64,000 nucleotides of DNA, taken from NCBI GenBank assembly GCA_043228905.1, contig JBHGNT010000002.1, forward strand, positions 7,440,001 to 7,504,000, in the 5' to 3' direction. The stretch is from Azolla caroliniana. Its lineage: Eukaryota; Plantae; Polypodiophyta. The notes under the pieces were generated by a model. The model was not told the origin of the DNA and did not search any database. It saw nothing but the letters and a program-made list of their open reading frames with translations. The translations under genes were made by a program, and so were the position numbers. Positions 1-64,000 of the stretch are shown piece after piece (the first letter of the stretch is position 1; each line of letters starts with the position of its first letter).

Positions 1-46
1 ATTAATATATGCTTAAACACACTTAGATATTGCACATTCTGTACAG

Positions 47-9771
<9,725 letters not shown>

Positions 9772-17359: not shown

Positions 17360-17686
<327 letters not shown>

Positions 17687-30382: not shown

Positions 30383-30413
30383 TTTCTGTGTTACCGTCGC
30401 TCTGATACCACTT

Positions 30414-31051
30414 TGTTGCACACGGTGCTCGGCCACAACCGATAAATAGGATTAACTCACAGAAAATAGGAAATACAAAGTACACAAAGACAATAGAGAG
30501 AAGAGTACACAGGATATTTTACGTGGAAAACCCTAAATGGGAAAAACCACGGGAGTCCTCAAACTCCAACTATCACTATGAACAGAGATGTACAATGGTG
30601 AAGCTTCAAGGCAACAACCTTGGGCTCACTGTCTTCGCCACAGGCGGCGGTAATACACAGAGGCAACGACCTCCTCGTCTCTCTCTCTCTCTCTCTCTCT
30701 CTCGGCTGCTCTCTTCACTCTCTCTAAGTGAAAACAGAAAAATAAGCAACAACCAAAACTGTTTGCCCTAAGTCATATTTATACACATATGACTTTCGGG
30801 CTATTTACAAATATGGCCTCAAGGACCCTTGGCAAACATATTCATAAATATGTCCCCGCATCCGGATTTCTTTCCGGGTACATTCTTCATCCGGCTCCGT
30901 AGCCGGGGTCTTCATCATCCGGCTCCGTAGCCGGGGTCTTCTTCATCCGGCTCCGTAGCCGGGGTCTTCATCATCCGGCTCCGTAGCCGCAACCGGGCTT
31001 GCCGTCATTCATCTCCGGACATCCCATCCGGAGGGACCGAAAATCCCAACA
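30414..31051 (-). repeat. 5' LTR of element D
   Basis: TG...CA on minus, followed after 3 nt by the iMet PBS. Confidence 0.97.
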
Positions 31052-33010: not shown

Positions 33011-36000
33011 GACTTCTTCTTCATATGGAGGACACACTTAAGCAAAGTGTGAGAACCTTGACTACCTCCAAACAAATATGGGATAGATTAGAGGTTGATT
33101 ACCTCCATACGGACGTTACGTCCCAAGTTGCAAATTTAAAAACTTTAATAAATATGAATATGAATGAAAATGATGATGTTGATACATTTGTTAAAATTTG
33201 GAGACTTCGACTTGATGATGTGATCCTTTCAGGACTTAGTTTGCCAAGTTCCGTTCAATCCGCCCTCTTGTTAGCCGCCCTACCCCCATCATGGCAACCA
33301 TTTATAAGTACAAAATCCACATCACCCAACATTAGTGTCCCAACATTAGTGGCATCAATCTCACAAGAAAACATACTTCGTAGGGCAATAAATCAACCCT
33401 CCTCATCTCACGCCGCACTTTATATCAAACATCCAAATTACAATAAAAAACCTTACAATAAACCTAGATCAACATACCAACCTAATAACTCCAAATTTTA
33501 TTCACGGACTTCTAAATTTAATGATTCAAGGAATCATAACAAATCTAGGTTCCTTAGATCCTTTTGTACAAATTGTCAAAGGAGTGGACATGAAACAAAA
33601 GATTGTTATAGGAATCCTAACAATGGGAAAAGAACATATAAAGAAGACCAATCTTACAATGCATCACATGATGACTACGATTAAAATAATGACATATGTC
33701 ATGGTGACCAAAATTCCGATGAGGATAATGAAGACTCTTTCATTGCCTTCATGGCCCTCACTTCATTTAACAACTCTCCCACTTCAACGTGGATTCTTGA
33801 TACAGGTGCCACATGTCACCTCACCTCAAGAGTTGAATGGCTCAAAGACTATAAGGTCTTAGAGCATCCTTTCCCGGTTAGATTTGGGAACAATGGGGTT
33901 GAATATGCCCTTGGACATGGGACTGCCCATCTTGAACTTTCTGATGGGAACTTCATTGAAATCAATGAAGTTTACTATATACCTAACATAGCAAAAAACT
34001 TGATATCTTTCAATAAACTCACAAATGATAATACATCCGTCGAGTTTTATCACAAATATTGTATCATTCGTCATAAGACACCCTCTGGACGAGGCTATGT
34101 CGTTAACTGTCCAAGACAAGGATGTCTTTACCTCTTAGGTCGCTTTGTGGTACCTGCTGAAGAAGCACACCACATGGATGATTCAAACACATCCAACTAT
34201 GTGACCTCATTATGGCACTATCGATTAGGCCACTTAAACCATCAAACAATGGTTCACATGGCCCGACAACATATAGCAATTGGTTTTACTCTTCCTAATA
34301 ATTTGAAACTATCCCTTTGCGAAGGGTGTATATTTGGAAAACTCTCTAACTCGCCATTTCCATCCCATCCTACAACGACCACTAAACCCCTCCAACTAGT
34401 GCACACAAAAATATGTGGTCCTTTGTCTACCCCATCCCTATCTAGAAATGTATATTTCCTAACATTTATCGATGACTTTACTCGTTTCACGATGGTCACA
34501 TTTCTCAAGACAAAATGTAGTGATCAAGTCCTTGAGAAATTCAAAGCCTATCACAAACTTGCAACAAATCAACAAGAATTACCCCTTAAAGTACTCCAAT
34601 CAGATAATGGTGGAGAATTCAAGTCCCAAAACTTTCAAATGTATTGCCAAAATCATGGGATTCAACAACGGTTTACCATTCCATATACACCCCAACACAA
34701 TTCAAGGGTTGAACGACGAAACCGATTGTATATGGATGCCACTTGTTGCATGCTCGCCATTGCAAACCTTCCCCGAACATATTGGGAAGAGGCTGTTTCG
34801 ACCGCTTGTTATATATTCAATAGAACATATAGTCGATCAATTAGGACGACTCCATTTTCCTTGTGGTTTGGAAAAAATCCAAATTATAAACATCTAAGAA
34901 TCTTTGGATGTCCATCATATGCACTCGTACCGCTAGAAACTCGATCAAAATTAGATAATCACGCAATTCGCACAATATTGGTTAGGTATGGAGAACCTCA
35001 TGGCTATAAGGGTTATCGATTATACGACCCAAAATACAAAAGATTTATATTTAGCCGACGAGTGATATTTGATGAAGACAAATTGATATTTAATCCTCAT
35101 TCACATCATGGCTATGAAAAGATACAAGACGCGACTACCATGTCTAACACTGAATCCAATAAAGAAGTAATATCATCACCTACTAATTCTTGGCGGGCTC
35201 CACAAATGTCCTCGGAAATTCAACAAGTCACAATTAACTCTCCTCCATTAATGCCCTCATCTCTAGAGGTCCTCCCACAAGTCTTAGGTTCAACCAATGA
35301 CTCCAACTTATTGCCTTTAATAACCAAACAATCCCAACAAACTGATGTACATACTCCAATTTTAAACAGTAACCCCAACCAAAGTAAAAAGAGCCTTAAT
35401 AATCACCATAGCACTCATAAGGAAAAACTTTTAGATGGAACACAATTGACTCATATTGATTATTCATGCTCCCATCCTATCAAAAATCCCCTTATTCCAC
35501 TACGACGATCCTCGCGTCTTAATGACAAGTTGAAAACCATTGGTCACAATGATGCAAAAGTAATTAAAATAGGATGTAGGAATACTTCATATTCCATTAA
35601 TAATCAACATGTAGAACATACAAATAGTTCTGACATTGCGAAATCACCTACTTCACTTAGCTCTACATCTACTCCAAAGAAAGTTTGTACTATTCAAGAT
35701 CTTTATGATCACACAAAAAAAATAGACGCTCTTGTTGCAGACCATCAATTTGAACCTGAGTTTGCATTTTCGGCTCTTGGTTCCCCCTCAACCACATCAG
35801 ACATTTCTGATGATCCCTTAACTATCAATGAGGCATTGCAAAGCCCAGATCATAATGAACGACAAGCTACCATGGCAAAAGAACTTGAATCTCTTGAGAC
35901 CAACAAAACGTGGACCCTAGTACCACTCCCAATGGGATGCTCACCTATTTCATGCAAATGGGTGTTGAAGAAAAAACTAAACCATGATGGTACTGTTGCA

Positions 36001-37373
36001 CGTTACAAAGCTCGACTTGTCGCTCGTGGTTTTTCTCAAGTTGAAGGACTTGACTATTCTGAGACATTCTCACCCGTTCTTCGCATGGCATCTTTTCAGC
36101 TTCTAATGGCTCTGGCCACCATTCTTGACCTCAAGGTACATCATTTGGATGTACAAATGACATTTCTACATGGTGATTTACCCGAAGAAATCTACATGTC
36201 ACAACCTCCTGGGTTTGAGTCACACTCTCAACCAAACTATGTGTGTTGGTTACATCGGTCACTTTATGGACTCAAACAATCTCCTAGGTTATGGTTTCAA
36301 AAATTTAACAATTTTATGCTCTCACATGGCTATTCTAGATTGTTATTAGAACCAAATATATACATTAGACATAATCATACATCTAATCGGTTGTTAGTGG
36401 TAGCACTATATGTGGATGACATTCCTATAGTTGGAACACCATCTGAAATTACTCAAGCAAAGCTAGAACTTTCCAAAGCATTTTCAATAACAGATTTAGG
36501 TCCCCTATCTTATTTTCTAGGCATGCAAGTTTCGCGTAATCGTAGTATGGGCACCTTGATCATTCATCAAAATAAATTCATTAATGAAATTTTGAAATCC
36601 TTCGGAATGTTAAACATTAAACCTTGCCCTACTCCCTTATCACTAACATGTAACTTAAGCATATCCGATGGTCCAACCATGAAAAGAGATATTAATTTTA
36701 TGCAACAATTTCCCTTTAAACAATTAATAGGAAAACTTCGATATTTAGTCACAGGAACTCGTCCTGACCTTTGTTTTGCAATTAATTATCTATCGCGCTT
36801 TATGCATAACCCCAGCCTTATGCATTGGAAATCACTTCAACGAGTTATGCGATATCTAAAACACACATCCAACTATGGATTAACATATAAACGATCCCAA
36901 TCCGAAAGACCAATCAAATCACTTGTTGGTTGGTTTGATTTGGATTGGGGGGGGGGGGGGGGACGTTGATTCTCGAAGATCTACTGCTGGTTTTTCTTTT
37001 ATAATGGCAGGAGCAGCAGTGACGTGGCAATCGAAAAAACAAGAATCTGTGACACTCTCATCTGCTGAAGCTGAATTCGTAATAGTGGCATTAGCTGCTA
37101 AAGAAGGATTATGGTTGCAAACAGTGTTAAAAGAACTCCAACTATGTGAACCACTCCAATTGAAAATCTTATGCGACAATATATCATGTATCTACTTAAC
37201 GAAGAATCCAAAGCACTCGGAGAAAACAAAACATGTGGATTAAAAATATCAGTTTTATACGAGAGTTGGCCGAAGAAAACAAGCTTACCTTAGAGTTTAC
37301 ATCGACAAATAAATCAATCATATGTGGGCCGATTTTCTAACAAAGGCTCTACCTCCGGACAAAAACTACCATT
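33010..37373 (+). mobile_element. Copia element A, AT-rich, gag-pol nearly complete but lacking both LTRs
   Basis: Gag ORF 33025-33684 (LPPSWQPFI, CTNCQRSGHETKDC), one in-frame TAA, then ORF 33751-36969 (WILDTGATCH, LWHYRLGH, QSDNGGEF, YKARLVARG, LYVDDI). A poly-G frameshift at 36946-36962 precedes RNase H (SSAEAEF, HSEKTKHVD, ADFLTKAL). No PBS, PPT or LTR found. Confidence 0.9.
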
Positions 37374-38536: not shown

Positions 38537-41121
38537 ATGCCGAAATCTAACCTAACTTCATACACCATCAGGAGCACCACCCGCCAAGTCGTCGAAGGTG
38601 ATATACGAACATCTATCCGCTGATTAAATTAGACCTGCCATAGCTAGTGCTTTCTTTTAATCTTTTGTTTGCTCCGCTGATTAAATTGGACCTGCCATAG
38701 CTAGTGCTTTCTTTTAATCTTTTGTTTGCTCCGTTCAGTGCCTTCCATAAATTTTGAAAAAGGCCAATATCTTAATTTTCTGCAAACAATATAAGTCTGA
38801 AGAGTGCTATTTAGATTTATATAGATTCTGCTTTCTTCGCTTTCTAAATGTGACGTGTTGTATATTTTGTTTTTTTTTCACATTAATCTTCAAAGGCATT
38901 GTTATATCTTATCTTTGCAAACCTTTCTTGATTTGAATGCATAAAATAACAACAAATAGATTCATATTTTGTGTAATCTTGAAGCTCAAGTTTAGGGTTT
39001 AGTCTGTTTCCAAACACGATTTAAGGTTTCCAAATCATGACAGTTGGAGACAATGTGATAATACGACCTGCAGAAACAGAGAGACTTCCATACGTTGCAA
39101 GGATTGAGAAGATCGAATCAGGGTTTCCTAGTGTGGTGGACAACGTTATGGTGAGGCTGAGATGGTATTATAGACCAGAAGACACCGTTGGAGGAAAAAC
39201 ATCCCATGGAAGCAAGGAATTGTTTTGGTCTGATCATTTTGGTGTCCAAAGTGCTGACACCATTGAAGAGAAATGCAACGTTCATTCCTTCAAAAGATAT
39301 ACCAAACTCAAGAGTCCTGGTGAGAATGATTTCTTCTCGCGATTGAAATACAAAGGTTCTACAAGAACCTTCACTCCTACTCGTGTTCCTGTGTGAGTAT
39401 TGTTTGTTTCCATTTGAAAACTAGAGTTAACATATGGCATCAATAACTGAGATGATCCGTGTCTTGTTTTCATTTGTGCATTGATTAACAACTAACAATT
39501 TAGGAGTTAGTTAATGTGTAGATACTGCCGATGTGGGGAGCCTTACAACCCTGATGATTTGATGGTGCAATGTGAAGATTGCAAGGATTGGTATGTGTTC
39601 TCTTACAGTAAATGTGTGCATGTTGATTCCTGACATTGTCTTCAAACATTTGGAAAGCGTTAGATACAATATTTTGGTTAAATATTATCATATCTTTATA
39701 ATGGTGAAAACTGTAAAGTTAATCTCCATTAGCTTACTTCTATTATAATGCTTTCAACCTGTGGTTGTGGACAATGAATTTCAGAAAGAGAAATTTTATG
39801 GAAATTTTCTCTAGTAAAAACCTGCTGGACTCATAGGATAATGCAAAATGATTGATTAGGTTCAGACCCATGATGTCAATGCTGTAAACCACAAAGTCGG
39901 TTACCACTTAAAGTCAATCAGGGAAAATAATCAATCATTATGGCAAATTGTGTTTACAAATCCACAAATCAAGTCTATGTGCCTGCACAGACGAGGTAAT
40001 ATGTATGCTTGTTTGAATATGACTTACATATCAGCTTCTGTATGCAAATTGTGATGGAGATGCTTTCTTATTTTGATCTAGCATGTATTTTCTTGTTTTT
40101 CATAGCAATACCACTATACGATCTGATAGTATTAGGGATAATGAGCTTAACTCAAGCCAATGTGGCCTAAATCAATACCAATCCTTAACAATCTTCATAT
40201 TATTATGTCAGAGACTAGTTGACTCTAAGACTAGATGATATGGTGCTGAAGTTGAGTGCAAATTGTCGACAATGCGATGCAAAATATGCAGAATTGATAA
40301 ATGAGATAATCCTGATCGAGTACTTCAGCTAATAATGTAGTTTGTTGGAAGGAAACACAAATTTAAGTGCATGAGAATGTTTATAATCTTTTATCTTCAT
40401 CTGCAAAAATGATGCTTACCTTAGTTCACATTGTTGAGTTCAGGTTGCATCCATCATGCCTGGAAATGGCTCCTGAGCAATTGAAGAAAGGTGATCGTTT
40501 ATGTTGTCCTGAGTGTGAACTGTTTAAAATTGATTCATCTGACTCATCAAAAGAGAAGACAGAGGTAAGCCAGTGTTTTACAACTACCAAACTACTAAAT
40601 TATATTGCATTCTATTTGCATTTTTCTGATATTGAATGTGCTCATATGAACAATTGACAATGAACCTTTTATCATGAAATACATACATGCAGGTCCTGTT
40701 CATATGAATAATTATTAATATGGCTAGAGATATGCCCAGTTGCAATGACTCCTTGTCATGAAATATGCATTTTTGTTGAGTTCATGTATACCTTAATTAG
40801 GAATCTATGAAAGTAAGTTCAGAGATATTATACCCATTTGCAGCTATGACATTGTAATGAAACAAGGTTTTTTGTTACTGTTCATGTAAATAAACCTTAA
40901 TTACAAATAAATGACGATTAAGGCTAGAAACTTGCCCATTTTTTCTAAATTAGAAAGGAATAATAAGGCCGTAAATGGTTGCTTGTGCTTGTCTTATTAA
41001 GGTTTGATGTGTGCGTATTTAACCAACCATATTTTAACCAACCATATTCTAGAGTGTAAAACAGTTGTATCTGAATTTCATCTGGTGTGTGCAGGCTGAA
41101 TCAAAGCGACAAAAGCGGTGA
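38537..41121 (+). CDS. EBS: EBS/SHL-family BAH-PHD chromatin reader (divergent paralog)
   Basis: Exons 38537-38597, 39044-39392, 39522-39590, 40444-40564, 41095-41121 (TGA). SYTI...VGDNVIIRP...PYVARIEKIE...RWYYRPE...HGSKELFWSDH (BAH); YCRCGEPYNPDDLMVQCEDCKDWLHPSC...CPEC (PHD); C-terminal KRQKR NLS-like tail. Confidence 0.93.
38616..38733. repeat. 57-bp tandem duplication in intron 1 of the BAH-PHD gene
   Basis: tccgctgattaaatt(a/g)gacctgccatagctagtgctttcttttaatcttttgtttgc twice, one mismatch. Confidence 0.95.
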
Positions 41122-47044: not shown

Positions 47045-49082
47045 TTTGTTTCTGCTTTCCCTTCTTGCTTCTACGTCTTCTTCTTCTTCTTTTGCTTTCT
47101 GCTTCCTCTTCTGGCTATGGCTTCATGACAGAGAGAGAAGCCCCTTCAGCGTTAGAGGATAGACGTGCTCCTGGAGTACAAAACCCTGTTGGAGAGGTTC
47201 TCCTGCTTTCACACTTGTCCGGACAAAGCCACCTTCATCAAGGATCGAATTCATCAAAGTGATAGTAAGAGTAAATTGTAAGAGCATGACAAGCCACTCC
47301 TCCCAATGGAAAAGCGATATACCCTCTTGCTTTCTACACGTTAAAACACATTATGAAGCTTACTTGTTAGTCTTTGTTGGCTCGATGATCGTAAACGACA
47401 TGTAGGATGGAATAATGAAAACCGTGTTCCTATAACACCCTATTGAATGATGCTTACTCGTCCAACTCCACTGGTAGCAATGCTGGTGACACTATCTAAA
47501 GGAAGGAAAAGCGTTGGCGAATGTTATAAACAATGAGAACATATCACAAGTGCAACCTTTTTCTTCGTGTTAGGCACATGGCCCATACAAATGGTTTAAG
47601 AGATGTAGCGTGGATACATGACACACAATACTCGATCTATATCCATGAAGCAAGTGCTCAATATTTTCTTAATAGATTGAATCACGAACAATTGGATTGA
47701 AGGGGCAAGAACAACAAGGTACAAAACTATTGTGCTCACGTCAATCTAACATATTGAGACATTATTAATATAAAAAGCAAATAGCAACACCTATGCCATT
47801 CAAAGCAAGACAAGTAATTATTGTTAACCCAATCATAGCGTCATAAGTCAATGCAAATTGGGGACCTTTCTAGAGTAGAGAACATTTGCACACTTTTCTC
47901 TCCTACCAAAAAAGATCAAGGCACCACCACCTCATATAGAATGAAGTTCGTGGCACCACCTCATATAGTATAATATGAACAATTTAGCACCACGTGAAAA
48001 TGTTTTCCAGCTCCTTTAGCTAGTACACCAACCTCGCATAAACTCTTACTTGGACATAGCCACCTCCACTTGACAACCATGTAAATGCTCCATACTTGAT
48101 CACACAAAGGGAACTTTACAAAAAAACACATGAATACTCTACTACAATCATAAGAAATTTGTATATTTGTGAATAATTAAACAACTTGCCTTTTGTCACA
48201 CAATTTGAGTCAATATAATTGCTACTATATCCACATCTTATCAAAGGTCGAAAATCACATTTTGATAGGTGGCTAAATTTTGTAAATTTATGTATGATAA
48301 GACCTACTTACAGATGTTCCTCATCAATCTCATGAATATGATCTAAGCATTGAAACCCTAATGTAATCGCCACGAATAGAACATTCATTACATTGCTTTA
48401 CAACATAATCGTTAGATTTCAAATTGCTACAGCATATGTCAAGAAATGCTGGAGCAAAATCTGAACCTATTATAATGCAGATGAGACAGTTGTTTCCTAT
48501 TTGTCTCAGCTACTTAATATTCCACTGCACCTATTTATATATTTACACTGGTACAGTTATTTGGCAATTGCATGATCTAAATTTATCAGGAAAGACTGCA
48601 GTCATTAATGATGTACTCTGTATAGAAACTGAGAAATTCTCAAAAATTCACAGAACCAGCACCAAAACATGATGCTCGATCGGTTCAACTATCATTGAAA
48701 ATTACCATACTTTCCAAAAATGACGCTAAAAATTGGAACTATTTTGCTAGAGGTATATAATCATTACTGGAAAAAGTATATAACATTACAATGAAAATTT
48801 CAATGGAGAGCATTGGGTTTTTTATGCTTCCAATGACTATAGTACAAATTGGGATGCATTACGTTTTCATTTTGCCATCGACCACCATTTACCAATCAAT
48901 AGTAGACATCATTCAATTGGTTTAACTCTAGTTCGAATATGCGAAATCCATTTGTGGATTGATAGTAGATTTGAATCTATCTGGCGCAACTCAAGTCTAG
49001 TTATGGCTCTTTTCTTATAATGAGCATCATACATGTAAATGTAATTCTCCTTCTCTTGAATATGCAGCAAAAAAGATGGCAT

Positions 49083-52000
49083 CTAATTCACTTTCTTGTC
49101 TTTGCGTCCAACAAGAATGCGAGAAATTTGCAATCCCCTACTGAATGCTTGATTGAAGAGAAGGCGAGTTTGAAAGTCAGAGATAAATGGAAACCAAGCC
49201 AATATCGCAACTGGTGCAAATAACAGCAATCCCATCAGACCCTCATAGGCCCAAGCTAAAACTTTCACAGAATCCCACATGTGAATTTTCTTTACTGAGC
49301 CTTTGCATGATTGGGCTATCTGGAACACACATAAATGAGCTTCCACATTAGTTACAATCTTGGTTTTTTCCATCTCTTTATTCAACTCACTGAAACTAGA
49401 ATAACAGGTCTTTATTCAGGGTTCTGACACTAGTAGGATACCTCAATCACAGAGTTTGGAATTACCTGAATAAGTGCCCAACCAGATGGAAGAAATGCTA
49501 GGGCACTAATAAAAAGATCCACAAATGTGAGGTTTGCAACAACAAAAAGAACTATTAAAATGCTCAACACAATCATAAAACATCCCCCTTTAATCAGCCT
49601 AAACAAGAGCGGATTCTGGGTTCTGATATTCCTACTTCCCCAAGAAAATCCCTGATAAACAATCCAACATGTTCATGATTATCAAACATGAAGATAATAG
49701 ATATATATTTTTGAGCTCTATATGTTATCCAATATGTCACCTTGAATGCAATGAGCATAAAAACCACCAGTAACCAGGAAAATATGTAGACCTGTACAAA
49801 AGATTGTGCTGGGTTGAGATTCTCCACAGTGAGTTTGATATTAGCAAGCATGTAGGCATAACCAAAGACAACTCACCCCTATGCCTTGACTTCTATGAGC
49901 AATATGAAGGTGATAAACCAGACCATATTGGTAAATAAGAAACCTGCCAGCCAAGAGGATTTCAATGGCCTTCCCTGGAATACTAGATCTCTCAAGATGC
50001 TCTTGTTCAGCTTCCCACCAAGTCTCCCAACTTTTGTCAGCAGGCACACCTATTCCGCCTCTATTATTCACCCACTTACTCCAATCTTCCCAATCATCGA
50101 CTATCTTCTGCCACTCAAATCCAGATGGATTGAACAGGGATGGTGCAAAAAGCCATGTTCCCACCAAGAACCATAGCAGGAAGGTGATAAAAACATAAGG
50201 TGCTGAAGTGCTTGAAGAGGAACCATAAGCATCATATATTATTAGCAGCATGAGGAGTTCAAGAGCTTTTGTGAAGTGACTACGTGAATAAAGTCGATAG
50301 TTCTCAGCAAATTTTGCATGAAATACAACAAACGATCGTTTCAGTTGTGCAGGTTTACTGGACTTGTTATATTTAGGTCCACCATGTAACAGAGTCCGGC
50401 CATAAAAATGCATCTTTATACCCGTCATAAAAGTAAAGAAGACAGCAGCAAGCTGAAGTTGCATGATGACAAATTCGCTCAGAGCTGTACGAAATCCTTC
50501 TTCCAAGCCTATTTCCATGAACATGGGAAAGGAAATAAGGAATCCTAATTGCATGAGAGACTGTGATGCCATGGCCACTTGCAATGATTCATTTTCCTGA
50601 AGTGTTACAGATCTAAACTTTATATTTGATTCCAGACCACTTAGAGAAAGATAAATGCGCCCATAAAGAAATGTGTACACCACCAAAACAGCAATCTGCA
50701 TCAATCAAACCAGATCAACGTTTTGTAAGCCCAACATTGACAACGTTTGAACAGCACAAAGAACAAAGTAACTTGCAGAAAGGAAGAAGAACATTGAAGT
50801 GAATTGACATAAGGTCCAATAGGAGTGTGATAAACTGAACACACTACGCAGCACAAAGAAACGAAGTAGCTTGCAGGAAGGAAGAAGAACATACAAGTGA
50901 ATTGACATAAGGTCCAATAGTAGTGTGATAAACTGAACACATTCTGAAGAAGTCAACCCGATGTCCAAGACGATAGATATCCCTGCTCATTGTCTGTTCA
51001 CCATTTCCAGTGGCAATCCTGGCTTCAGCCAGACATATCTGATTCAGGCGCATATCTCGTCCCTTTCCCACTTGAATATACTCATGGTGGGTTATGCTTC
51101 CGCTTCGTAGTATAGTATTATATCCTGATAAATAGATACAAATAAGATTTGCTTTGACAAGTGCATTATAAGACAACCCACATTGACTTCAGGACTTATT
51201 ACAGCATACCTGCAAATATATGTTCATTTAGATTTATTGTGGGAGAAGCCTTGCTTATGCCACCTCTACTAAGGTGAAAAAGCCTATCAAACACATCTGA
51301 ATGTCCATAGTGGAAGCGGACCCTGTTTCAGTCATCAAGTTTTTAAACAAAACAATCTAGCAACCTACTGAAACCAGTGAGACAAGATATGAAACGGCAT
51401 CCTACCTGAGAGGATTGGCTAACACCCGCTGTCCAAGAGTAACAAAAGTAGATTCCTGACGTGACATGAATCCTGCCAAAGATGAAACGCTGCATTGTAC
51501 CACATTGAGTTACATATTATGATGAAGAAGTAGAATACTGACAAAAAAGTGACGCCTACCTTCCGCTAAATATGTGTTCACGCATTCCAAGAATAGAAGG
51601 GGTCGCAATACCATTATGCACGTAGAATTCTTTGAGAAAATTTCTCATTTTAAGCGCCTCTTCTAAGTAAGAATCCTGAGAAACAGGAAATTCATTCCAG
51701 AACTCCTTTCCAAAAAGGAATAATAGCCAGTTCAAAAACTAACCTGATTCATGTCGATTGCTTGCAATGCATCTCCTCTTGTAAAAATTATGGCATGATT
51801 CTGGTTCTCAGCTTTACCCTCTCCCAAAATAGGTTGACCAGGCAACTTGATTTTGTAAATTGTCTTTTGATGACAGGAAATAAATAAATAAAGTTAAACT
51901 TCTCCACAATTTCAACTTTAGAAAACATCCAACTCCAGAATTAAATAGGAATATTTTCATGTCGAAATAGTAAAACAGACGAATTTGTATACCTGATAGC

Positions 52001-55000
52001 TATCTTTCACACCTTTTACAAGGACAGAGTAATATGTTTTCTCTTTGCTTTCTTCTTCCTCCACATATGCCACTCTCAAACACGGGTACCTGTTGTGTCA
52101 AAGCACAGAAGCAGCAGAGCATAGTTATCCATATAATCTACTGATTTTCAAGAAACAAGCATGAAATGAAACTATCTTTTCCTTCAGGGGAAATATACAT
52201 GTAAACCTATTCTGTGTTTCTTACTCTTGAAGTAAACGGACGATATCATTAGCACGTGATTCTCCAGTACGTTTATGAAATTCATCTTCTTGGCAACTCA
52301 CTACGTATGTGAGTTTCATGTCAGCAATCGCCTGAATTTTGGCACGAAACTGAAGAATCCGTTTATCATCTGTGTCTGCTTCCATTATAGCTGTATATCC
52401 ATCCAGTATATCTGCAGGAAATAAATATTTTTATGCTAGGTAAAAGTTGGAAAGTCAAATACAATAAATAACAACCTGAAGAGAAGTTGATGATTTTACC
52501 TGTTCTTTCAGCTAAGTCAAAAAACCCATGGATCTCAAGTGCTTTACGATAGTACATCATACCTCTTACTGCATAAAACAAGGTGTATATACACCGTGAC
52601 TCGTAAGAAAAAGCATATATAAAGCAATTTATACAAAAAAGAGGTTGGTGTTGAAAATCCCCACAAACCTATAATTTAGACAGATCACAATCTAATATGC
52701 AGGAATTAAATAGCAGCGAACACAATATAGCTCGTCCTGCACCCTACCCAAGCCCATAGCTTTTTGCTGGTCTGTAGATAATATATGTAGATGATAAGCC
52801 CACAACACTATCGTAGTTGAGATGATGGAAGGCAGGTAGCGAGTCGCGACGCTACTATGTCATGCCTTCTGAATGCTATTGTATGTCCTGGCATCCAAAG
52901 GTTATCCTGCCTTCTGAAATCACCACATGGAAAATGCACACTAGTTGTGGTTGACTAGCATGCCTCACTCAGTGATTTAGAATTCCCTATGCACTGTGGA
53001 GAACTATGAAACCCATGTAGGCCCATCTTGATTCCAAGGAGACCTGAAACCAATTCTATAGGATCCATTCACCACAATGCAAAAATGGTCTGTCTTAAAA
53101 TCGGTTTCCAAGAGGATCATGCTGAACCCATTCTCATACAATATCACCCTCTATTATAGCTCGTTTGCCAAACTCCTCTCAGTAATTCGTCAGCATACGA
53201 AGACATGTGTTGATGGACACACCGACGTCAAAGACTGCTTCTTTCTTATTGCTAAACTGTGGAGCATAACTAATAAGATACTCCTGAAAAAAAAGCTAAC
53301 CTTCACCGACAAGAAACTGGCCAAGTAGTGGTTGACTTTAGAAATTGGGAGGTGATGTTGAAAACTGCTTGGAACTAGGCCAAAGTGAAGGATACTAAAG
53401 TCACTTTTAAATTAAATCCCTGGTATTCACACACAAACTGAAGCTACACATGAGCCATATAAGTTATGAGCTGCATCTAAGTTGAAGTTGCAACTGAAGT
53501 TGGCATGTTGGCGTAGTCCTATGTCAAGCCATGTTAAACTCACCAGAAGCTACGGTATGTGCCTTACTGCAACTAACCCTCAAGGTAAATTAGCATTGTC
53601 TTGCCATTCTTTACATGCAGTGGCGTTTCCATTCTTAGAAATCAAGAGCTTTTGCACGTCTCATAGAAAGTTGTAATCCACAGAGGCCTACCATACAAAT
53701 TCACAAAAAGGGGGAGAGGATCTACAAAATGTTGTGGTAGCAAACATGTCAATTTGATTGGTCAAATCCAAGACGCCCTTGGGAAGTGATTCTTAACACA
53801 AAACAGGAACATTCCCATGTGTGACTATTATACAGGAACAGATCATCTCTTATGTGTCATCGACCATCTCATTATTTTCATTACTGTTTTTTTGGCTTAT
53901 GAAAAGGACTATAAATGAGAAAACCATGGCCAAGTTTTTCTACAAAGATAGCCTGCTCAAAACGACGCAACCAATTTTAGAATCCTGTTTCCCAACCCAA
54001 ACATGAAAAGTATCAAGGTTTATGGGTGTTATGTACCCATCATAGAATCTTTGAAGCTCTGCTTACCTGTTCGTGTTAGTGTTTGTGCGTGATATGATGC
54101 CCATTTACAGACTTCACTAGGTATTCCATCTGAAAGCCCGACCAACTTTTCAGGATCAGTTTCTTTTATATCCACTCGTTTGAAGAAATTTTTCCACTCA
54201 TCTGTTTAACAGATCTTTAAGTATTAGATACGCAATAGATAATGCATCCAAAGGAACTTTGTTTTTAATGCATAACATTAGACATGCTGTTACCTGGATA
54301 AATTTTCGTAAGGTAATATAGAACAGATATACCATCATCATTCTCAAGTTTAAGAACCTTTTCTGTGAATATGATATCCTCTCCATAGTAAGGAGTCAAT
54401 ACACTGTAAATAACCAAACAGAGGCAATAGGAACAAAATAAGGGGTCTAGATTACTAACACTAACTGGTAGGAAACATAGAAACTGTTTTGTGCTAGTTT
54501 AAAATCCCACCTGAAAGATAGCACATCCTGGATTCGTGGAGGTGATGGCATTTTCATAAAAAGAGAGTTGATAAAGTAAGTAATACGTCGCCTAGCCTCC
54601 AGATTGGAAGGAACATCCATAAAATGCTCCTCGGTGGTTAAGAGCAAGTGAAGTCTTTTGATCTGCAATCATTACATTAATACTCCACTAACTCTTTACA
54701 TATACAGCATATAGCCAGAAAAAATCCTTTACCTTCTTCAGTATTTCATCTTTCGTAGGAGGATACAGTATTGATCCTTTCTGAAATTCAAATCTGTGTT
54801 TTTGTTTTTCCCATCTCCTATCAGCACTTTCAGAGGGGCCTACATTCTCTCTGAGGTAAGATAAAAATAAAAGTGTTCGTTTTTAGACTACATGTAATAT
54901 GCAGGTACAATATAAGTCTTTATGTGTATTTGTTTAGACAATTATAAAACCTCATGTGTGCTTCGGTTAAAATCTCGTTCGACATTTCTGGGTGTCCGCG

Positions 55001-58000
55001 ATCCATGTCTCTGAAGATAAGTTCACAGTTTAGGCAACATCATGTACAATGAACTATTTAAGTTACATATCCTGCATTTAACCTATAATGGTTACCAGTT
55101 CAACATCATAAGAATTAGGGAAACAGAATAAAGTAGACTCCTAATGCTGATAAAAGTAGATATGATGTTTTTCTACCCAACCTATTCCAGTTGTTTGATG
55201 TGGGCAATTCCACACACTTGAATACGGCTTTCTTTTCAAGTATGTGAGGTGGAGCACATCAACCCACAGAAAATGTGAAAATAGAAATCTGGTCAAGCAA
55301 CACACCTACCTTCAGGGAAATTAAGATTCCCTAGAAAAACATACTTGCTAAACAAAAGGAATATTTTCTAGACAGAGTGAAATGTACTGCTGTATATGTA
55401 TGCCAATTTCTGCATTGCAGAGTCCTACTACAATCATGAAAAACTGGTCAAGCCAATACAGTAGTCCATCTCTAGATAAGCATAAAATATTTTATAAGAT
55501 GAAATCTTGGATACTCACTGGTCAATCTCATTCCTTACATCACCATCATACACTTCAAGTATATCCTGTAGGAGGAAAGTTAACTGCTCTTCTTGACTTG
55601 GCTCACATTTCTCCTGCAAGATTCAATTCTAATTCCCATTGCTAAGCTTAAAGTTTATAGCAAAAAAAAACAGAAATCTTACCAAAATCTTCACAAGTTC
55701 AACAATCTTGTGGAAAAGTGAAACTAAACCAGTCATTCTGAACTTCCTGAAAAATGTACTTCCTTCTATGCTCTCATTGACATCAGTAACCACCTGATCT
55801 ATGATACTAAATATATATATCAAATAGAAGAGTTCCATTACAAACAACCACCGGAACTATCTATACAAAATAAATTATCACATCCCAACATTACCTTTTT
55901 TCATGCTCGCCAATAACTATACCACACAGAACTTCCTTCAACAAGTCATAAGACTCCATAACAGCATATTCCACATATGGATCATGCTTCATCCTTCTGA
56001 GGAGTTCCTCATAATCCACTTTTTCTCTATCAGAGTATTCGTCAAACATATCTATTACTGAGGCTACCTGTAAGCCCAAATTTCAGATAAACAAAATAAA
56101 TGGTGATGCTACTAGAAGCATAGAAACTACACACAGACAAAAAAATGGTGATGCTACGAGAAGCATAGAAACTCCACACAGACAAAAAAAATGCTGATGC
56201 TACTAGAAGCATAGAAATTATGAACCTTCAACCTTCGATCTCTTAGGCAACAATATCTTGGAGAGATCTTGAGAGATGTAAAAGACTAGCAATCTTAACA
56301 GTGCTCCTTTCACATGCTTCAGATATACCCAGACACTATAACATACACCATATTAGTCCATACAGCCATCACTACAAGAGCTTAGTTCCTCTGCTTATTT
56401 CTCTATCTGTATGGTCTATCAAGCTACAGAGATTCAACTGTATGCAGCCATAAGGTCTCCAAGTTGAATATTTTATCCTACATCTTTGTAGGTCTCTTTC
56501 TTATGCTCCTCATTCTCTGATACAGTTTCTTTTGAAGGTCACAAGTCCTGGCAGACACCACTAACTACAAATCCATCATGATTGGATATCTGTTGGTGGC
56601 TAGGAAAACTTTATAGAGAAGTTATTATGGCACCATGCAACTAGAATGAAGCAGGTTCTCCATCAATCAGCCTATCTTTTCCATCCTCCGTCTGATTGAG
56701 CAGAGACTTTACTGCCACTTGGCGGACTTGCAAATCACTTTGCCGATTGCAGCTGTTATAGATTGCAAAGACGTTATGTGAATGAACCATATATTGTACT
56801 TCATAAAAGATAATGAAAGTGATCCATTACCCAAGTGATAAAACATGACCATGGTATAATGCCTGTAGAATAATGACTTCTGTATTGTACTGTAACATCA
56901 GCTAATCATTTACCATGATGAGATGCACACCATCCATAGTTGTCATCAGAGCAGCATATTGCTAACACATTTTAATGCAAGTCAATATAAAAAACATCTC
57001 ACAGTAACCTTATTAGCCAGTAGAAACGGAGGCCACTGGATATATTTCATCCTCTGCTTAGACGAATATGGTATCAAAAGACGTTCCATCTCTGAATTGT
57101 TTATGTAGTCTTCTTCCCAAAGACTCTTGATAACCACATTCCAAAGCTGAGAAAACACTGCAACCTGCATCTCTATGTCAGCAACCTTTGTATTATCCTA
57201 CAAATTTAAGAGTAAAACATCAACGATCTTTAAATACCCGCTGTCAAAACAAACACGTTTCATAGATAGGGATATAGGCCTAGTCAGTCATCATATACTG
57301 TTCCAAAAGGTCCCCTAAAAAGGAACTCGAGTTCCTGACAAAACTAAACCCATACCTTGCCATCCTGAGACTCAGAATTTTCATCAGCAGGGGAGTATAC
57401 TCTACGGTGCTGCAGATCACTATAACTTCTATCCAAATACTTGTAAGTCTTGTATAGTGAGAAATGTTGATGGTACCCATGAGCCTTGTCATCAGATGTA
57501 TGAGATACCAAATTCACATTAAAGGCTGCAGGTAAGGACCGAAACCGTGACTTCAGCATTTCTAAGGTTCTAATCTGCCATATAGGAGAAAAAATCATAA
57601 TTAGAAAATAAGATTATAGTTAGGGAGAATTGAAACAAATACCTTTTGTTTCATTTCTATTCATAAAATATTTGCAGAAAGATTATGGATGAGGGTGAGA
57701 CTAATTTATCTCTTAAGTTTGTAAACAAGACTAACATAATCCTGTTCAACCATGTTTAAATGGCTTAAAACATAAAGAGTAAAACAGCACACTACTATAA
57801 AAATGCAGGAAGAGTAAATTTATGAACGCCATTGTTTGTTTAGATGATCTTTGTTCAAGTTGGTGGACAAACATTACAATAACACCATGACAGCTGGAGA
57901 ATTATCATAAAGGCCAAAACTAAGGTTATTGATGATAATACTGATTGTATTTCCCTATTTCTTCAAGATTACGAATCTCCTGTGCATGCCATGTTGATGG

Positions 58001-61000
58001 GTTCTTCTTCACCTACATGGATACCAGCACAGTACGATTTCAGCTAGCCACAGTTTTCAGGTTACTGAGCTTATACTCTCGAGGAAACTTTCATTGCAGC
58101 CATTGGCTATTGTTTGGATATCTATAGTAGTATAGATGCTTCCATTAAACAAAACAGAATTAATAATACCCCTGAAATAATAGTGTAAAAGTAGTTCATC
58201 ATGAGATAAACTTTTGTTCTTCATTCCTTGTACTTTGAATCTCAAATTGAACATCTTTGTTCTAGGTGTGTATGCAAGAATCGAAGAGGTCCATTTTCTG
58301 AGTTTGTTTTTCAAGAAGGTTGGGATTAGTCATCATACAGCCCTGTGAAAAACTCCAAGGAGCTATATGAAAGAGAAAAATGGAAGCAAGATGTTGTTAT
58401 TAGAGGTACTCAAGAGGAAGAATCAGGGAATACACTCTCTGTTGCGGGGAACATCACAAAACTCTTTGAAGATTGCTTTGCTATGTGTGATGTTATGATA
58501 TATGGAGCACATCATGTTGGCTGGAAGAGGCCAAAGGTAGAACCATGTCAAGCCATTGTTTGCAGTCTTAGATGACAAGAAAAGAGGCATCTTTTTAGAT
58601 AGTAGCAAGTTGTACCTAAAAGGTACAATTTCTTTGTATCAAAAAGATCGAACCCATAGGAGCAAAGAACGAACAAGGCAAGCCTATGCAACCAGAAAAA
58701 AACTCAAAATGCATAGCAAGTGATGATCATCAACACGACCAACACGAATCCGACTCGAACCCTCGCTTGAGCACAATCAGCAGTCCCAATGTGGAGTTAG
58801 CGGTAGCATTACAATCCATCCAAACCTTAATATCAATGATGGAAAAAGAATGAGCCACCATAGATGGCCCAAGACTCCCCACAAACAATAGGGGTAAAAG
58901 CCCCTCAATCTCAAAGTTAGTTCCTCGTTTCCTTGGGTTCGGAGACGAATATGACCACGTTGAATGCTTCAAGCAAATAAGCTGAGCTTATGAAGCCATC
59001 ACGGAGATGTGCCATCCTAACCAACAAAGTTTTGTGTGCCGTCCTAACCAAGATTGTAGCAGCTTCCCAATCAGACTGGTGCACCAAATTACACGCCACG
59101 TTTTGGGCCTTCCATACATCCTACAAGGTCGCCACAAGCCACACGCCACACGCCTTTCAAGCTCGTATACGGCCAAGAAGCCGTAGTTTCGGTCGAGTTC
59201 CACGTCCATATACTCCGGATAGCAGTCCAAGAAAGATGGGACGGAGATCTCCTACCCTCACATCTCGAAAACCTCGAACGTTTGACAGAGACCCCTTTAA
59301 TTGCCTTCCAAGCGCTCTTAATGAAAAAAGCAAACAGAAAAGTTTGGCAAGACAACAAAGTTAAAGACAAAGACCTAGCAGAGGACGATATGGTCCTCAA
59401 ATTCATGTCCCAACGACATAAGAAAAAACTCAAGCTACAAGGGGAAGGACCTTATATCGCCTCCACAATCACAAAGACGGGGTGTGTCGATTATGCAAAC
59501 TTGACGGAACCGACATCCCAAGTATCATCAACGGGAGTAAGCTCAAACTCTAACTTGGCCATAGAAAACCTTCACGCTCGGAGCCTTGCTCACTGGCTGG
59601 CAACGTGATATGGAGTCCAAATTAAAGGCATCCGAAACCCACATAGCTCAATTGGAAGCCGATCTCCGCAATGAGCAGTCAAAGCTCAAACAACAAGGAG
59701 AGCCCCACCAAATCGCCATTGCGCCACTGACCAGCTCCAAAACCCTAATGTCCCATCTGCCATGCACGATCAACAATTCAACTATTCACCGGTCCTTCAT
59801 CGACACTCCTCTCCTTCGACATGTGGGAACGCCTAGGTTTCCCCAACCTAGATGAGTGCAACGACATTTTCCATGGGTTCAAGGGATCCATGGCATGCTG
59901 CCTCAGACTACTGACATGCCAAATCAAGATGAAGTACAGCACACATGCAATTAAAACCCACGTCCTTCCACCTAAGGTGTTGTATATGTCGTGCCTCCTT
60001 GGCCAAGATTGGTGCCATGCCAACCAATGTTTAATATCTCCTAGCACGAATACCATTCACTTCCCCACCTCGACCGGCCTATGCGCGGAACAAATGCCTA
60101 GCACCACACTTGGTCACCACCACACCCGTTGAACCACCCACCCAAACTCTAAACAACTCGGGCAACGAGACCATACTCAGTGTGGAACATACCCCTAGGC
60201 ACACCCGACGAACCAAAACCCCGACTACAACAAAATCAACAACTGACTCGCACAAACCCACATCCGGCAAATCTCACGGGTGGGTCAACATTCATGGAAC
60301 CTTTGCCGAAGGACCTCGAACCAGTCAAAAAGTGGTATGGAACCAATGGAGAAGGATGGCACAAGGGTGCTACCCAGTTCTGGGTGCCAAAATGCAGCCG
60401 CATACACACCCCTACTTAGGGCATGAAATGAAGTAGAAAGATATCTTAACGTCTTTTCTAGGCCAAAATGGCCTCAAGGACCAAATAAGAGATTACATCT
60501 GTTGCCTTATCTTTGAGAACAACAAATCAAAATAAATAAATGTTATTATGTAAAAAAAAGTAAATAAGATAAAAAGATACTAAAAAAATCTTGTTATTGG
60601 TAAATGTAAGATTCTCAAGTCAGATATACTGTAATTTTGTATTTAAAAGATCTCTAGGATTGGTCAATCCAAAGTGGAGGAAATCCAAAATTTGTTCTTA
60701 TGTAGACAATTGGGGCAAAATCCTCAACATCCTATCCTATCATGCGATTAGAAACAGATGCTTGGCCCATAGAGGTACTAGCCATGCTGAGTATACAAGT
60801 ATATCACAAAATTCAAGAATATGCCCGATCAGGTACAAAAAACTAATAAGAGTAAAATCCTCTTATCTAATTGGGTGCTTGACATTATGAAATGGTTAAA
60901 GAAATGGGGCATAAAATATCTATTGGAGCCTCAGGTGATGCTATGAACTATGCGATCATTGAGGATAGATTACTAGAGGCACTAAGGATGAAATGGCAAG

Positions 61001-64000
61001 ATGTTAAAATGCCAAAATCGGAATATTACATTGCAAATATTAACCCCCAATAGAAGATAAAAATGTCAGACCATGTCCAATTGCATCCCACTACCCCCAT
61101 GAGCCTTGGCTCTCAAAGAGCCTCAAAACTTCTTCAAACTCGCTCACTCAAATTAGGTGGAGGTAGAATCATGACATTATCACCCAAATAGCAACCATAC
61201 GCAATGAAAACCTAGTGGAGGATGAATATCACTTACTTATCACATGCCCAACACATAAGGCAATTCGCGAGAAACATGATGACTTGTTAGACGGGCATAA
61301 TATTTCACTAGCATGCTCGAATGTCCACCAAGAAGGGTGAGCACATACATGTGTGCATTGTTTTTACTTAGAAAGCTTTTACTGTAGAGTAGTAACCCCC
61401 TTCTTAGGACGCAGTCACATACAAATGATATGTTGATTTGATCCCATAGATCAACTTTGGCCTCCACATGGATGATAAAATGTCTATTTTATTTTATTCC
61501 AAGAAGGGTGAGCACATGTGTGCATTGTTTTTACTTAGAAAGTTTTTACTGTAGAGTAGTAACCCCCCTTCTTAGGACGGAGTCACACACAAAATGATAT
61601 GTTGATTTGGGCCCATAGATCAAATTTGGCCTCCTCATGGATGATAGAACGTCTAATTCCAACAAAATTCATCATTTCTGGCATCTCCATGCTTGTGAAT
61701 GTGTCTATTATCAATATTAAGAACATATTAAGAACGAACTCCATGCCTATAGGCCTGGTAGAGGAATTCCATGCCAGACCATTGACAGATTATATGGATA
61801 ATCAATCCTAGATTTTTGAAAGAACATTGACTACAAACCTCACCAAGTCGCGAAAATGCTCCAATAACACCCCCACAAATAGTCGACCAGATTGCATACC
61901 ATATTTGGGTATCCATAAAATAGACCTACAAAAAAGCAAGATCATGATGCATTAACCCAGTATAAAAATAATGTGATTTAGGGACAATAAATGATTACCA
62001 GTACAACAGGGGTCCAGACGAGAAGAATAACCCCAAAATTGTGTTTTTCTGCATTAGATTGAGATGTCCACTTGAGAAACAGCTCTAAAAAATTATTTCA
62101 CATATAACTGGGAATGAAAACACTTATTCCTACCATTGGGGAATGCTCCTGAGCTATCTGTCACTGTCATAATTTGCTTCGTTGGTTCAATCAAGGGTTT
62201 TATCTGGAAGGATGTGATTCTCAGTTGAGGACATTTACAGAAGGAACCCATGGATTAGGTATCCCTTGAATTAACCTAAAATTGTTTTACCTCCAAATAA
62301 TAGCTAAACAATAGCTTACAGGTGAACACCAAAACCCAGAACAGAGTGTACCTAGTTAGTATAAAACAACAAAAGTTATAACTGCACACACATGTTTCTA
62401 TACACTCAAAGTAACAGCCTTCAATTCTTGTTGGTCACTTACTTGAAAAGAACATAAGGGCTCTCGTGCATACCACGCCCAACATAGATTTGTGGCTGCA
62501 GAAGTACAATATTGTTAATACTTTCTCATTTTTGTCTCACAGAAGCCATGTTTCTATGAGGTATGCAGTTGCTTTCAAAACATAAGAATAGCATTCACCT
62601 GGGCCCACCATAGAAGAATTTTCACAATTGTAAGTTCTGACCGCTCAATAGCCCGCCTTAGCATTGGAAACAGGAACAAGAATGCACTGATAGCATCTGG
62701 TATCAAGTAGACTAGGACAGCAGTCACATAGAGGGATGGGCTTTCGGACTTCCCTAGCCAGTTCTCTAAGATGCTCACCAATCCATTTGAGCCTTCCAAT
62801 GAGTGAGCATAACAAATGGGCAAAGCGATTACCCATGCTAGGGCGGTCATCGCCTTCAAAACATATCGAAGTACATCAAGATAGTTATCTTTTCGCCATG
62901 CCTTGAAGCTCAATCCAATATCCACAACAGCTGTATACGTGAGCATACAATTAAGGCTATCAAGCATACATTATACTCAGCATCACGCAAAGAAGATATA
63001 TTCTTTGGTGTCAATCTTAAGACAGAAGTATTGGAGGATTACCTTGAATCAGTCTGAGAATTGCAGATGTAATAAATATACTCAAAACCTTCTTGAAAAC
63101 AGAACCACTAAAAATGATCGAAAATGAATCACTGCCATTCCATGCTATTATAATCATAGCCTAAAAACAGAACAGCATACATGCTATGGATTCAGGATGC
63201 TTATTTTTCTAGTAGAAATCAGCTTCATTTAGTTATTGTGAATTGTAAATATATCCACCCGTATCCTAGTGGCATAGATATAACATCATGATAATATGTA
63301 TAATACCTGTAGTGATAGTATAAAAAAGGACCACATCCTGTTGAAGCTTCTAAAGATGTGCAAAAATGTGCGAGCTTCTACAAAGTTAGTTTTTCCCATC
63401 CACATAGATTGTTCATTCCCACTAGTATTTATCTGAAACCAAATCCATCGGGCAGAAATGCATTAAAACATTGTGTGATTACATATGATGATCCCACCAG
63501 TATTTCAGTATATCTGTGTATGTTGCTTACCAATGTTGTTTTCCTGTGCTGCTTGGTATTCCACTTGAAGAACTTATCATCTGATGTAATGGGCCAGCTG
63601 AGGCTGAAGCAATCTACAGACCTATTAAGAAAACATTACAAGTTTGATGTTCAGAATAGAGAAGGGTTTAGGGTTAAAATCTTGTAGAAAATAATAAGAA
63701 GTTTCCTTATTAATTCTTGAAGTTTTTACAACATTTTATATGAGAAGATGGTTATCAACAGGAGGTTTGTAGTATACCAGAAATACTCATTAAGATCATC
63801 ATAGTTGCGCCATGAAGAATGACCAGAATTTTTTGAATTGGCACAATTGAATTCCTGAAATAGAAGCATGTTAGCTGGCCACTGCATTAATTGAATATTC
63901 GAAACCTCTAAAGGAAATTCTGCAATGTCTTACCTTTTCAATGAGTTTATAAATTGGTGTAACTACTTTTAGCAGAAAAGAATCTGGATCTTGTGAATTT
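49083..64000 (-). CDS. CALS: Callose synthase (GSL/CalS, GT48), 3' ~two thirds, divergent at catalytic motifs; 5' exons beyond the window
   Basis: About 33 GT-AG exons traced, e.g. 63778-63854 ([12 protein letters not shown]), 63307-63432 (GKTNFVE), 61839-61925 (YFMDTQIWY), 57009-57197 (QWPPFLLA), 54511-54662 (NLEARRRI), 54294-54403 (VLTPYY), 51744-51863 ([12 protein letters not shown]...IDMNQ), 51210-51322, 50895-51124 ([12 protein letters not shown]), 49878-50695 ([14 protein letters not shown]) and 49083-49319 ([18 protein letters not shown]). No stop or frameshift found in the spliced frame. Confidence 0.95.
50752..50941. repeat. ~98-bp tandem duplication spanning a CalS exon 3' end and splice donor
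   Basis: cagcacaaagaa...ggaagaagaacat...agtgaattgacataaggtccaatag.agtgtgataaactgaacaca at ~50752-50843 and ~50849-50941. Confidence 0.93.
56098..56217. repeat. ~45-bp tandem repeat (about 2.7 copies) in a CalS intron
   Basis: aaatggtgatgctactagaagcatagaaact.cacacagacaaaaa repeated. Confidence 0.92.
58345..58700 (+). mobile_element. Non-LTR retrotransposon ORF1 relic (L1-type RRM/CTD-like)
   Basis: [11 protein letters not shown]...IYGAHHVG...QAIVC...LYLKGT...DRT resembles the N-I-x-I-x-G...AHR-x-G...RPIIV...LKG pattern of LINE ORF1 proteins. Confidence 0.55.
58720..60500 (+). mobile_element. Gypsy (Athila/Tat-type) relic: integrase C-terminal half plus downstream extra ORF
   Basis: [12 protein letters not shown]...DW...[20 protein letters not shown]...LVYGQEAV; GEGPY (GPY module); NGSKLKL. 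Followed by a coiled-coil and protease-like pieces. Confidence 0.8.
60690..61657 (+). mobile_element. LINE 3' end (RTEX/CR1-L2-like ORF2 C-terminus) with duplicated 3' tail
   Basis: [15 protein letters not shown] and [21 protein letters not shown] (EDExH..CP C-terminal motif). The 3' ~165 bp occurs twice (61328-61498 ending in tattttattttatt, and 61499-61657). Confidence 0.7.

Follow-up and report, generated by a model that had tools for sequence, protein, structure and literature searches.

A gene on the minus strand of contig JBHGNT010000002.1 of the fern Azolla caroliniana (assembly GCA_043228905.1, positions 7,440,001 to 7,504,000, a stretch of 64,000 nucleotides referred to here as the window, in whose own numbering all coordinates are given) encodes a callose synthase of family GT48 and of CalS3 type, in which the HPD, SED and FEAK of canonical enzymes are replaced by HSD, NEH and LAEAR, and in which the loop that latches uridine diphosphate (UDP) has been lengthened and rewritten. 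The gene is almost certainly functional in the evolutionary sense. The reading preferred here, to which a probability of about one half is assigned, is that its product would no longer polymerise glucan canonically, as judged by analogy with the corresponding mutants of yeast and Arabidopsis enzymes, and would serve heteromeric callose synthase complexes as a non-catalytic subunit.

Alignment of the translated exons against the solved chains of Saccharomyces cerevisiae Fks1 using phmmer (with exon-wise E-values of 2e-9 and 2e-5) placed the Ser of HSD at Fks1 P1196, the His of NEH at D1222, the Ala of LAEAR at F1258 and the Arg of LAEAR at K1261. The first-pass annotation of the window, which was prepared from the letters alone and gave the Fks1 numbering as ED1221-1222 and K1261, had drawn attention to the Ser, His and Arg codons; re-translation recovered the same peptide and codons, the alignment bore out the numbering, and the Ala opposite F1258 was added as a further change. 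The catalytic Asp of the (N/S)ED motif (Fks1 D1222, Arabidopsis CALS1 D1442) is therefore absent, the motif being read as NEH in the window gene (type A among the four related sequence types described below) and as SEH in its paralogue, type B. Interfacial helix 2, which contains F1258 and K1261 in Fks1, is likewise altered, with Ala and Arg in types A, A' and B; the Arg retains the charge of the Lys that it replaces, and in the window gene both residues lie within a 25-residue stretch encoded by the exon at 50895-51124.

A further alteration is found in the long exon (50695-49877), where the latch loop, GGAKY-RxTG-RGF in canonical plant enzymes, is represented by an 18-residue sequence carrying six extra residues in type A and five in type B. 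The pairing of an aromatic and a basic residue set five positions apart (Y1424 and R1429 in Fks1, RxTGR in plants) has been lost, with Lys or His at +5 and the Arg shifted to +11 in type A and to +10 in type B. This latch-loop exon (exon C) gave no match to solved structures at E <=1e-5; at a looser threshold it was aligned to Fks1 with 20 bits, and its Ceratopteris homologue with 40 bits. The residues that bind the donor sugar nucleotide, defined as K1082/N1085 (K-x-x-N), D1102/N1104 (NQD), K1246/R1248 (GKGR) and H1195 of Fks1, are kept in type A (as a 14-residue segment completed by the Asp of the following exon, GKGRD and HYGH). They are also kept in type B, in which the third motif reads GKGRN and a 10-residue segment is present together with NQD (contig L010).

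The expected consequences of such changes may be judged from published mutagenesis. Growth of yeast was abolished by the Fks1 substitutions E1221A/K and D1222A/K in the catalytic NED motif, by N1257A/W and F1258A in interfacial helix 2, and by Y1424A, R1429A and R1429K in the latch loop, and was lowered by K1261A, at a residue that touches the UDP phosphate (PMC13249079); K1261L likewise disrupts Fks1 function (PMC10499315). In work on Arabidopsis CALS1, ED1441-2AA left glucan at background in a yeast assay, and UDP is held by R1635 of RxTGR (bioRxiv 10.64898/2026.05.05.722910). The window gene joins three changes that each abolish function in yeast (the Asp in its A/K form) with a conservative replacement of Lys by Arg, and loss of canonical polymerase activity is, by analogy with Fks1 and CALS1, the most likely outcome. 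The suggestion of the first-pass annotation that the protein is probably unable to polymerise 1,3-beta-glucan normally, whether as a dead scaffold or regulator or as an enzyme of changed chemistry, is supported. Full-text searches of the literature found no description of a catalytically altered callose synthase clade, and no example of a GT48 pseudoenzyme.

The remainder of the protein has been strongly preserved. At 340 positions that are invariant in a panel of ten diverse callose synthases (of CalS3, 8, 9 and 12 type, plus ferns), the window gene keeps 323 (95%), and the 17 changed sites include Pro to Ser, Ser to Asn, Asp to His and Phe to Ala within residues 1420-1482, plus the Gly of RxTG. 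Because the changed sites are only mildly clustered (5/53 in residues 1400-1499 vs 12/287 elsewhere), the case rests on which residues have changed and not on their density. Among the database relatives that cover each column, the ED-position Asp is found in 67 of 77, the Pro of HPD in 58 of 60 and the Lys of FEAK in 157 of 167, so that the alteration goes beyond random variation. None of the ten relatives that deviate at the ED position carries His; several are short fragments truncated by the gene caller, three are alignment gaps, and the longer ones include the Adiantum protein P0080. The EH pair, whose common occurrence in active synthases would have counted against the first-pass reading, was found in no other relative sampled among those covering the column.

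The altered codons are not peculiar to one assembly. An independent DNA run bearing the same organism label (X2) matched positions 50970-52287 with 0 differences and positions 49000-50994 with one difference, without gaps, and two RNA contigs (X10 and X8) matched positions 51209-51321 with 0 differences. The CAT codon was found at the same place in three metagenome contigs (L001, L003 and L004) and in RNA contigs bearing three organism labels, is common to paralogue B, and in no run was another letter encountered at 51220-51222; the GAT that the first-pass annotation had named as a sign of assembly error was absent from independent DNA and RNA alike. Assembled RNA contigs, which show splicing and codons rather than expression level, have 15 introns spliced out of the interval 49320-54732 under three organism labels (A, E and H), all of them GT..AG on the gene strand. 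Transcripts of canonical callose synthases occur alongside in the same RNA run. The frame, translated exon by exon with split codons checked singly, is uninterrupted through 15 exons from 54662 to the stop codon, in agreement with the earlier claim that frame and splice sites are intact.

Over its whole extent in the window the gene (63984 down to 49083) was delineated using tblastn with the Ceratopteris protein P0002 (KAH7287599) and P0297, a full-length fern transcript product, which aligned about 30 exon pieces between 63984 and 49086 with zero stops within the exon cores. The portion from residue ~381 to the C-terminus is colinear with full-length fern enzymes, and the first ~380 residues lie beyond position 64000. 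Land-plant callose synthases are built of Vta1, FKS1_dom1, CALS1/Bag and GT48 parts with 16 or more transmembrane helices, and the Vta1 domain, if present here, would fall in that N-terminal part. Membership of GT48 was established by three exons which, when scored singly against Pfam PF02364 (Glucan_synthase; cut-off 37.2 bits), gave 135.9, 101.9 and 49.8 bits.

To find relatives of the altered gene, 1.8 billion representatives were searched with the LAEAR exon and a word index was queried with the long exon. The sequences retrieved, which share its oddities, are short gene calls made on metagenome and Logan contigs of low coverage, and they fall into four types. Type A comprises this window and near-identical copies in several runs, type A' (L005) has 92% protein identity to the window over the long exon, type B (L004, L007, L010 and part of L002) has 83% over the same exon, and type B' (L006), from the same Joint Genome Institute (JGI) project as A', has 80% identity to A and 94% to B. 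The inserted latch loop is present in all four types, HSD with (N/S)EH in A and B, and LAEAR in A, A' and B. The loop is the one motif to differ freely among the four types, to the point that its Tyr is lost in B', as expected if its role in latching UDP had lapsed. Types A and B and canonical paralogues co-occur in the same samples (in chimeric ENA contigs), and A and B have both been kept in at least two divergent species. Since A and B share the changes, the remodelling of the active site predates the duplication from which they arose.

Selection on these sequences was assessed as the ratio of non-synonymous to synonymous substitution rates (dN/dS), computed per exon with columns pooled, using the method of Nei and Gojobori (NG86) and maximum likelihood, over 220-385 codons of the C-terminal third. 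The ratio was 0.10 for A vs A' (349 codons, dS 0.40-0.45), 0.04-0.06 for B vs B' (220 codons, dS 0.56-0.74) and 0.10 for A vs B (385 codons, dS 0.81-0.92), and a canonical pair from the same samples (L024 vs L028) gave 0.07 (227 codons, dS 0.82-0.96). Types A and B thus look like duplicates of about the age of the canonical pair and about equally constrained.

In trees built on the long exon only, A with A' and B with B' each form a starred pair, the two being joined in a starred clade (100/99). Ceratopteris P0002, Adiantum P0294, Pteridium P0295, P0162 and P0297 belong, together with this clade, to a starred fern subclade (100/98), and the whole fern group falls with seed-plant sequences named callose synthase 3. 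The closest canonical group consists of P0002 (Ceratopteris richardii KP509_32G064600), P0294 and P0295, which show 63-67% identity over ~1400 mapped residues and colinear in-window domains; these proteins carry HPD, SED, FEAK and Y-RPTG-R, whereas the window gene carries HSD, NEH, AEAR and the lengthened loop. The plasmodesmal Arabidopsis enzymes CALS3/GSL12 and CALS1 are ~57% identical to the window protein, but in them the SED2 Asp (D1442) and the RxTGR Arg (R1635) are intact and required for activity. Fks1, which is represented by PDB entries 7XE4, 7YUY, 9PE1 and others, shares the GT48 catalytic core with the window gene and has NED, F1258, K1261 and Y1424-R1429, at each of which the window gene differs.

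The gene therefore encodes an enzyme homologue that lacks an essential catalytic residue, is expressed and is under purifying selection, which marks it as a candidate pseudoenzyme. In its sequence features it resembles members of that general class, such as pseudokinases and the catalytically dead subunits of enzyme complexes, which often keep their nucleotide-binding residues. Assignment of a subunit role would be the most economical explanation, because fold, channel and donor site have been strongly kept without the catalytic base; the role within complexes is itself speculative. The full reading may be set out as follows. Before the A/B pair arose the catalytic centre was remodelled, with the acceptor-activating Asp of (S/N)ED becoming His, the interfacial-helix Phe becoming Ala, the UDP-coordinating Lys becoming Arg, and the Tyr-x4-Arg spacing of the UDP-latching loop being lost. 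The protein would still fold and insert in the membrane, and may bind UDP-glucose, as its donor residues and transmembrane channel are kept; canonical polymerisation of beta-1,3-glucan would be lost, and the part played by the protein in heteromeric callose synthase complexes would be structural or regulatory. The core of the Arabidopsis complex has been described as trimeric, with CALS1 and CALS3 acting together (2026 preprint, bioRxiv 10.64898/2026.05.05.722910).

Several observations weigh against a purely non-catalytic role. The donor-binding residues, kept in both paralogues, are not obviously needed by a pure scaffold. Histidine can serve as a general base in other glycosyltransferase folds, and to our knowledge no GT48 enzyme has been tested with His in place of the Asp. 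The change of Lys to Arg is conservative and is weak evidence when taken alone. The dN/dS values refer to 220-385 C-terminal codons read in part from low-coverage or chimeric metagenome contigs, and the window does not reach the N-terminal ~380 residues, the part that in Arabidopsis CALS1 contains a Vta1 domain located at subunit interfaces. Finally, GT2 synthases have Arg at the place equivalent to K1261 (PMC13249079).

Some of these same points favour an active glycosyltransferase with altered chemistry, in which His would replace Asp as the general base, Arg would replace Lys on the UDP phosphate, and the longer latch would change gating, processivity, regulation or product (for example, short primers, another acceptor or another linkage). 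In its favour, the donor set (K-x-x-N, NQD, GKGR, the His of HxD and the Glu before the new His) has stayed whole in A as well as B across dS of ~0.9 plus the stem, and the two paralogues also agree in the newly acquired residues His, Ala, Arg and Ser. The stem of the A/B clade is ~2-3 times that of its sister group, yet the total paths are similar, so that the change looks focal and not global. Set against this, F1258A alone, R1429K alone and D1222A/K each abolish growth of yeast, and the three combined make canonical catalysis unlikely; the variability of the latch within the clade, with its Tyr lost in B', also argues against a newly tuned loop. Altered chemistry is accordingly retained as a tentative alternative. 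The possibility that the gene is a decaying duplicate (an unprocessed pseudogene) that is still open and transcribed can be granted little credence. Several essential motifs have changed together, a 98-nucleotide tandem duplication lies at an exon-intron border, a retroelement-like insert lies in an intron, and contig L001 has a 1-nucleotide exon deletion, all of which might be taken as signs of decay. Three independent comparisons at dS 0.45-0.9, however, gave dN/dS of 0.04-0.10, as low as in the canonical pair; the reading frame runs unbroken across 15 RNA-verified exons, 95% of the invariant sites are kept, both duplicates persist in at least two divergent species, and transcripts splice past the duplicated copy. 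An open frame, spliced RNA and such dN/dS values contradict the description of a pseudogene, and the untranscribed young pseudogene envisaged as a possibility in the first-pass annotation is likewise contradicted. That the change is an artefact of sequencing or assembly, or that the Asp is restored by editing of nuclear RNA, has a negligible probability, no support for either having been found and CAT being present in the window, an independent DNA run, three metagenome assemblies and RNA contigs of three organisms.

The deletion in L001, together with a missing splice donor in that contig, was considered as evidence of decay and rejected: L001 has 1.4x coverage and also collapses the duplication that the independent DNA run confirms, and its deletion is for that reason probably an error. 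An RNA contig of organism H (X17, 97% identical), to which the 3-nucleotide deletion of L001 at 50367 is common, splices normally. At the duplication itself the transcripts are spliced from the GT donor in copy 1 (after 50895), and copy 2, its GT lost, lies within the intron; the RNA joint 50695 to 50895 was seen in X10 and X17, and the X2 DNA contig spans the duplication without gaps (49000-50994).

The window gene may not be alone. A second lineage of fern CalS3-type proteins, represented by P0297, P0411 and P0412 (Logan, full-length, 1953-1961 residues), falls in the same fern subclade and also has an altered active site, with SQD for SED, GKGRY and YEAK in all three and TGGDF for TGRxF in two of the three, and is under purifying selection (dN/dS ~0.1 against the P0162 locus, its nearest canonical relative). 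It differs from the window gene in that the Glu rather than the Asp has changed, there is no loop insertion, and dS between them is 1.6-1.9. The Logan transcript contig L089 (254-6139) belongs to this lineage. A proposal that the P0297 group is the sister of the A/B clade was set aside, as the tree fork is open, only 5 conservative changes are shared, and P0297 has a larger dS to A/B than to a canonical sequence. For the Adiantum nelumboides protein P0080 (MCO5612409, 644 residues) an ancient sister relation to the A/B clade, which would have placed the loss before the split of fern orders, was considered and was rejected by the approximately unbiased (AU) test (p = 0.008); the protein falls in the other fern subclade, where its branch is long. 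P0080 is a strongly degenerate model, with DED for NQD, HSD, SES, GKGHN, HYAK and a rewritten loop, and may represent a pseudogene or else an independent instance. Because the P0297 group and P0080 are also altered, remodelled CalS3-type proteins may recur in ferns. An extension of that view, which is less likely than not, would recognise an undescribed fern class of CalS3-type pseudo-synthases, disabled differently in each lineage (EH with the altered latch in A/B, QD in the P0297 group, two of whose three members also have TGG, and the heavily degenerate Adiantum copy) and maintained by strong selection as non-catalytic subunits that tune heteromeric complexes of plasmodesma type.

Callose synthases have been treated as uniformly catalytic. 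Little is understood of how they are regulated or of what their complexes consist, and a strongly conserved, expressed subunit in which the catalytic Asp, the interfacial Phe and the UDP latch have all been changed would amount to a natural experiment. One possible outcome is that these complexes use non-catalytic subunits, as do many kinase and protease systems; the other is that a His base and an altered latch are compatible with GT48 chemistry. Either outcome would bear on the gating of plasmodesmata, on callose deposition and on how Fks1, an antifungal target, works.

Several of the database records consulted call for caution. The ENA contigs L002, L003, L007 and L010 and the protein P0160 (ERZ10343xx-ERZ10344xx, plant host metagenomes) jump between A, B and canonical sequence, and are most likely assembly chimeras, of which users of these records should be aware; L003 and L007 switch at one conserved stretch despite coming from different samples. 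From the chimeric contigs L002, L003, L007 and P0160 the unambiguous parts alone were used.

Table 1. Position of the callose synthase gene and of its principal features in the window
Feature	Position	Strand	Basis
Callose synthase gene, in-window part	49083..63984	-	tblastn with P0002 and Logan transcript P0297
Stop codon	49083-49085	-	exon translation
Long exon, 273 codons: transmembrane and interfacial part, latch loop	49877..50695	-	PF02364, 135.9 bits
Rewritten latch (RxTGR) loop, 12 residues in place of Y-RxTG-R	50336..50371	-	exon translation, alignment
Tandem duplication of exon end and intron start (period 98, 1.9 copies, 92% match)	50752..50941	.	Tandem Repeats Finder (TRF)
Exon with GKGRDM...LAEARIATG	50895..51124	-	RNA joints set both ends
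Arg codon of LAEAR, aligned to Fks1 K1261	51018-51020	-	phmmer
Ala codon of LAEAR, aligned to Fks1 F1258	51027-51029	-	phmmer
Exon with HYGHSD and NLNEHIFAG	51210..51322	-	translation; RNA joints 51123 to 51209 and 51321 to 51405; PF02364, 49.8 bits
His codon CAT replacing catalytic Asp (Fks1 D1222, Arabidopsis CALS1 D1442)	51220..51222	-	Fks1 alignment
Ser codon replacing Pro of HYGHPD (Fks1 P1196)	51298..51300	-	Fks1 alignment; common to paralogue B
D of NQD, first codon of following exon	51673-51675	-	exon translation
Exon with retained donor-binding motifs (10-residue segment and N-Q of NQD)	51744..51863	-	exon translation
Large intron, ~4.2 kb	57593..61835	-	tblastn exon cores stop ~61836, restart ~57592

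Within the large intron are open frames of retroelement-like appearance on the plus strand (~58700-60450), antisense to the callose synthase gene, which resemble the integrase end of a Ty3/gypsy-type element. Pfam gave no match for two of the open frames of this insert, so that the retroelement reading follows from the appearance of the sequence; a plasmid search with the insert found nothing.

Elsewhere in the window, long, uninterrupted open frames resembling Ty1/copia polyproteins were noted at 26312-30451 (minus strand, 1380 residues) and 33685-36966 (plus strand, 1094 residues), beside which lie broken copia-like fragments at 21689-25435 (minus strand); the 1380-residue frame may belong to a recently active element. 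Additional exon-like frames in the six-frame listing resemble a phototropin (~27-9800, plus strand; a LOV-domain stretch followed by AGC-kinase motifs) and an Aurora-type Ser/Thr kinase (~11650-15380, minus strand). An intronless frame at 17363-17686 (minus strand) reads as canonical histone H4, and frames at 39025-40654 (plus strand) resemble a BAH domain with a PHD-like zinc finger after it, as in a gene of chromatin-reader type.

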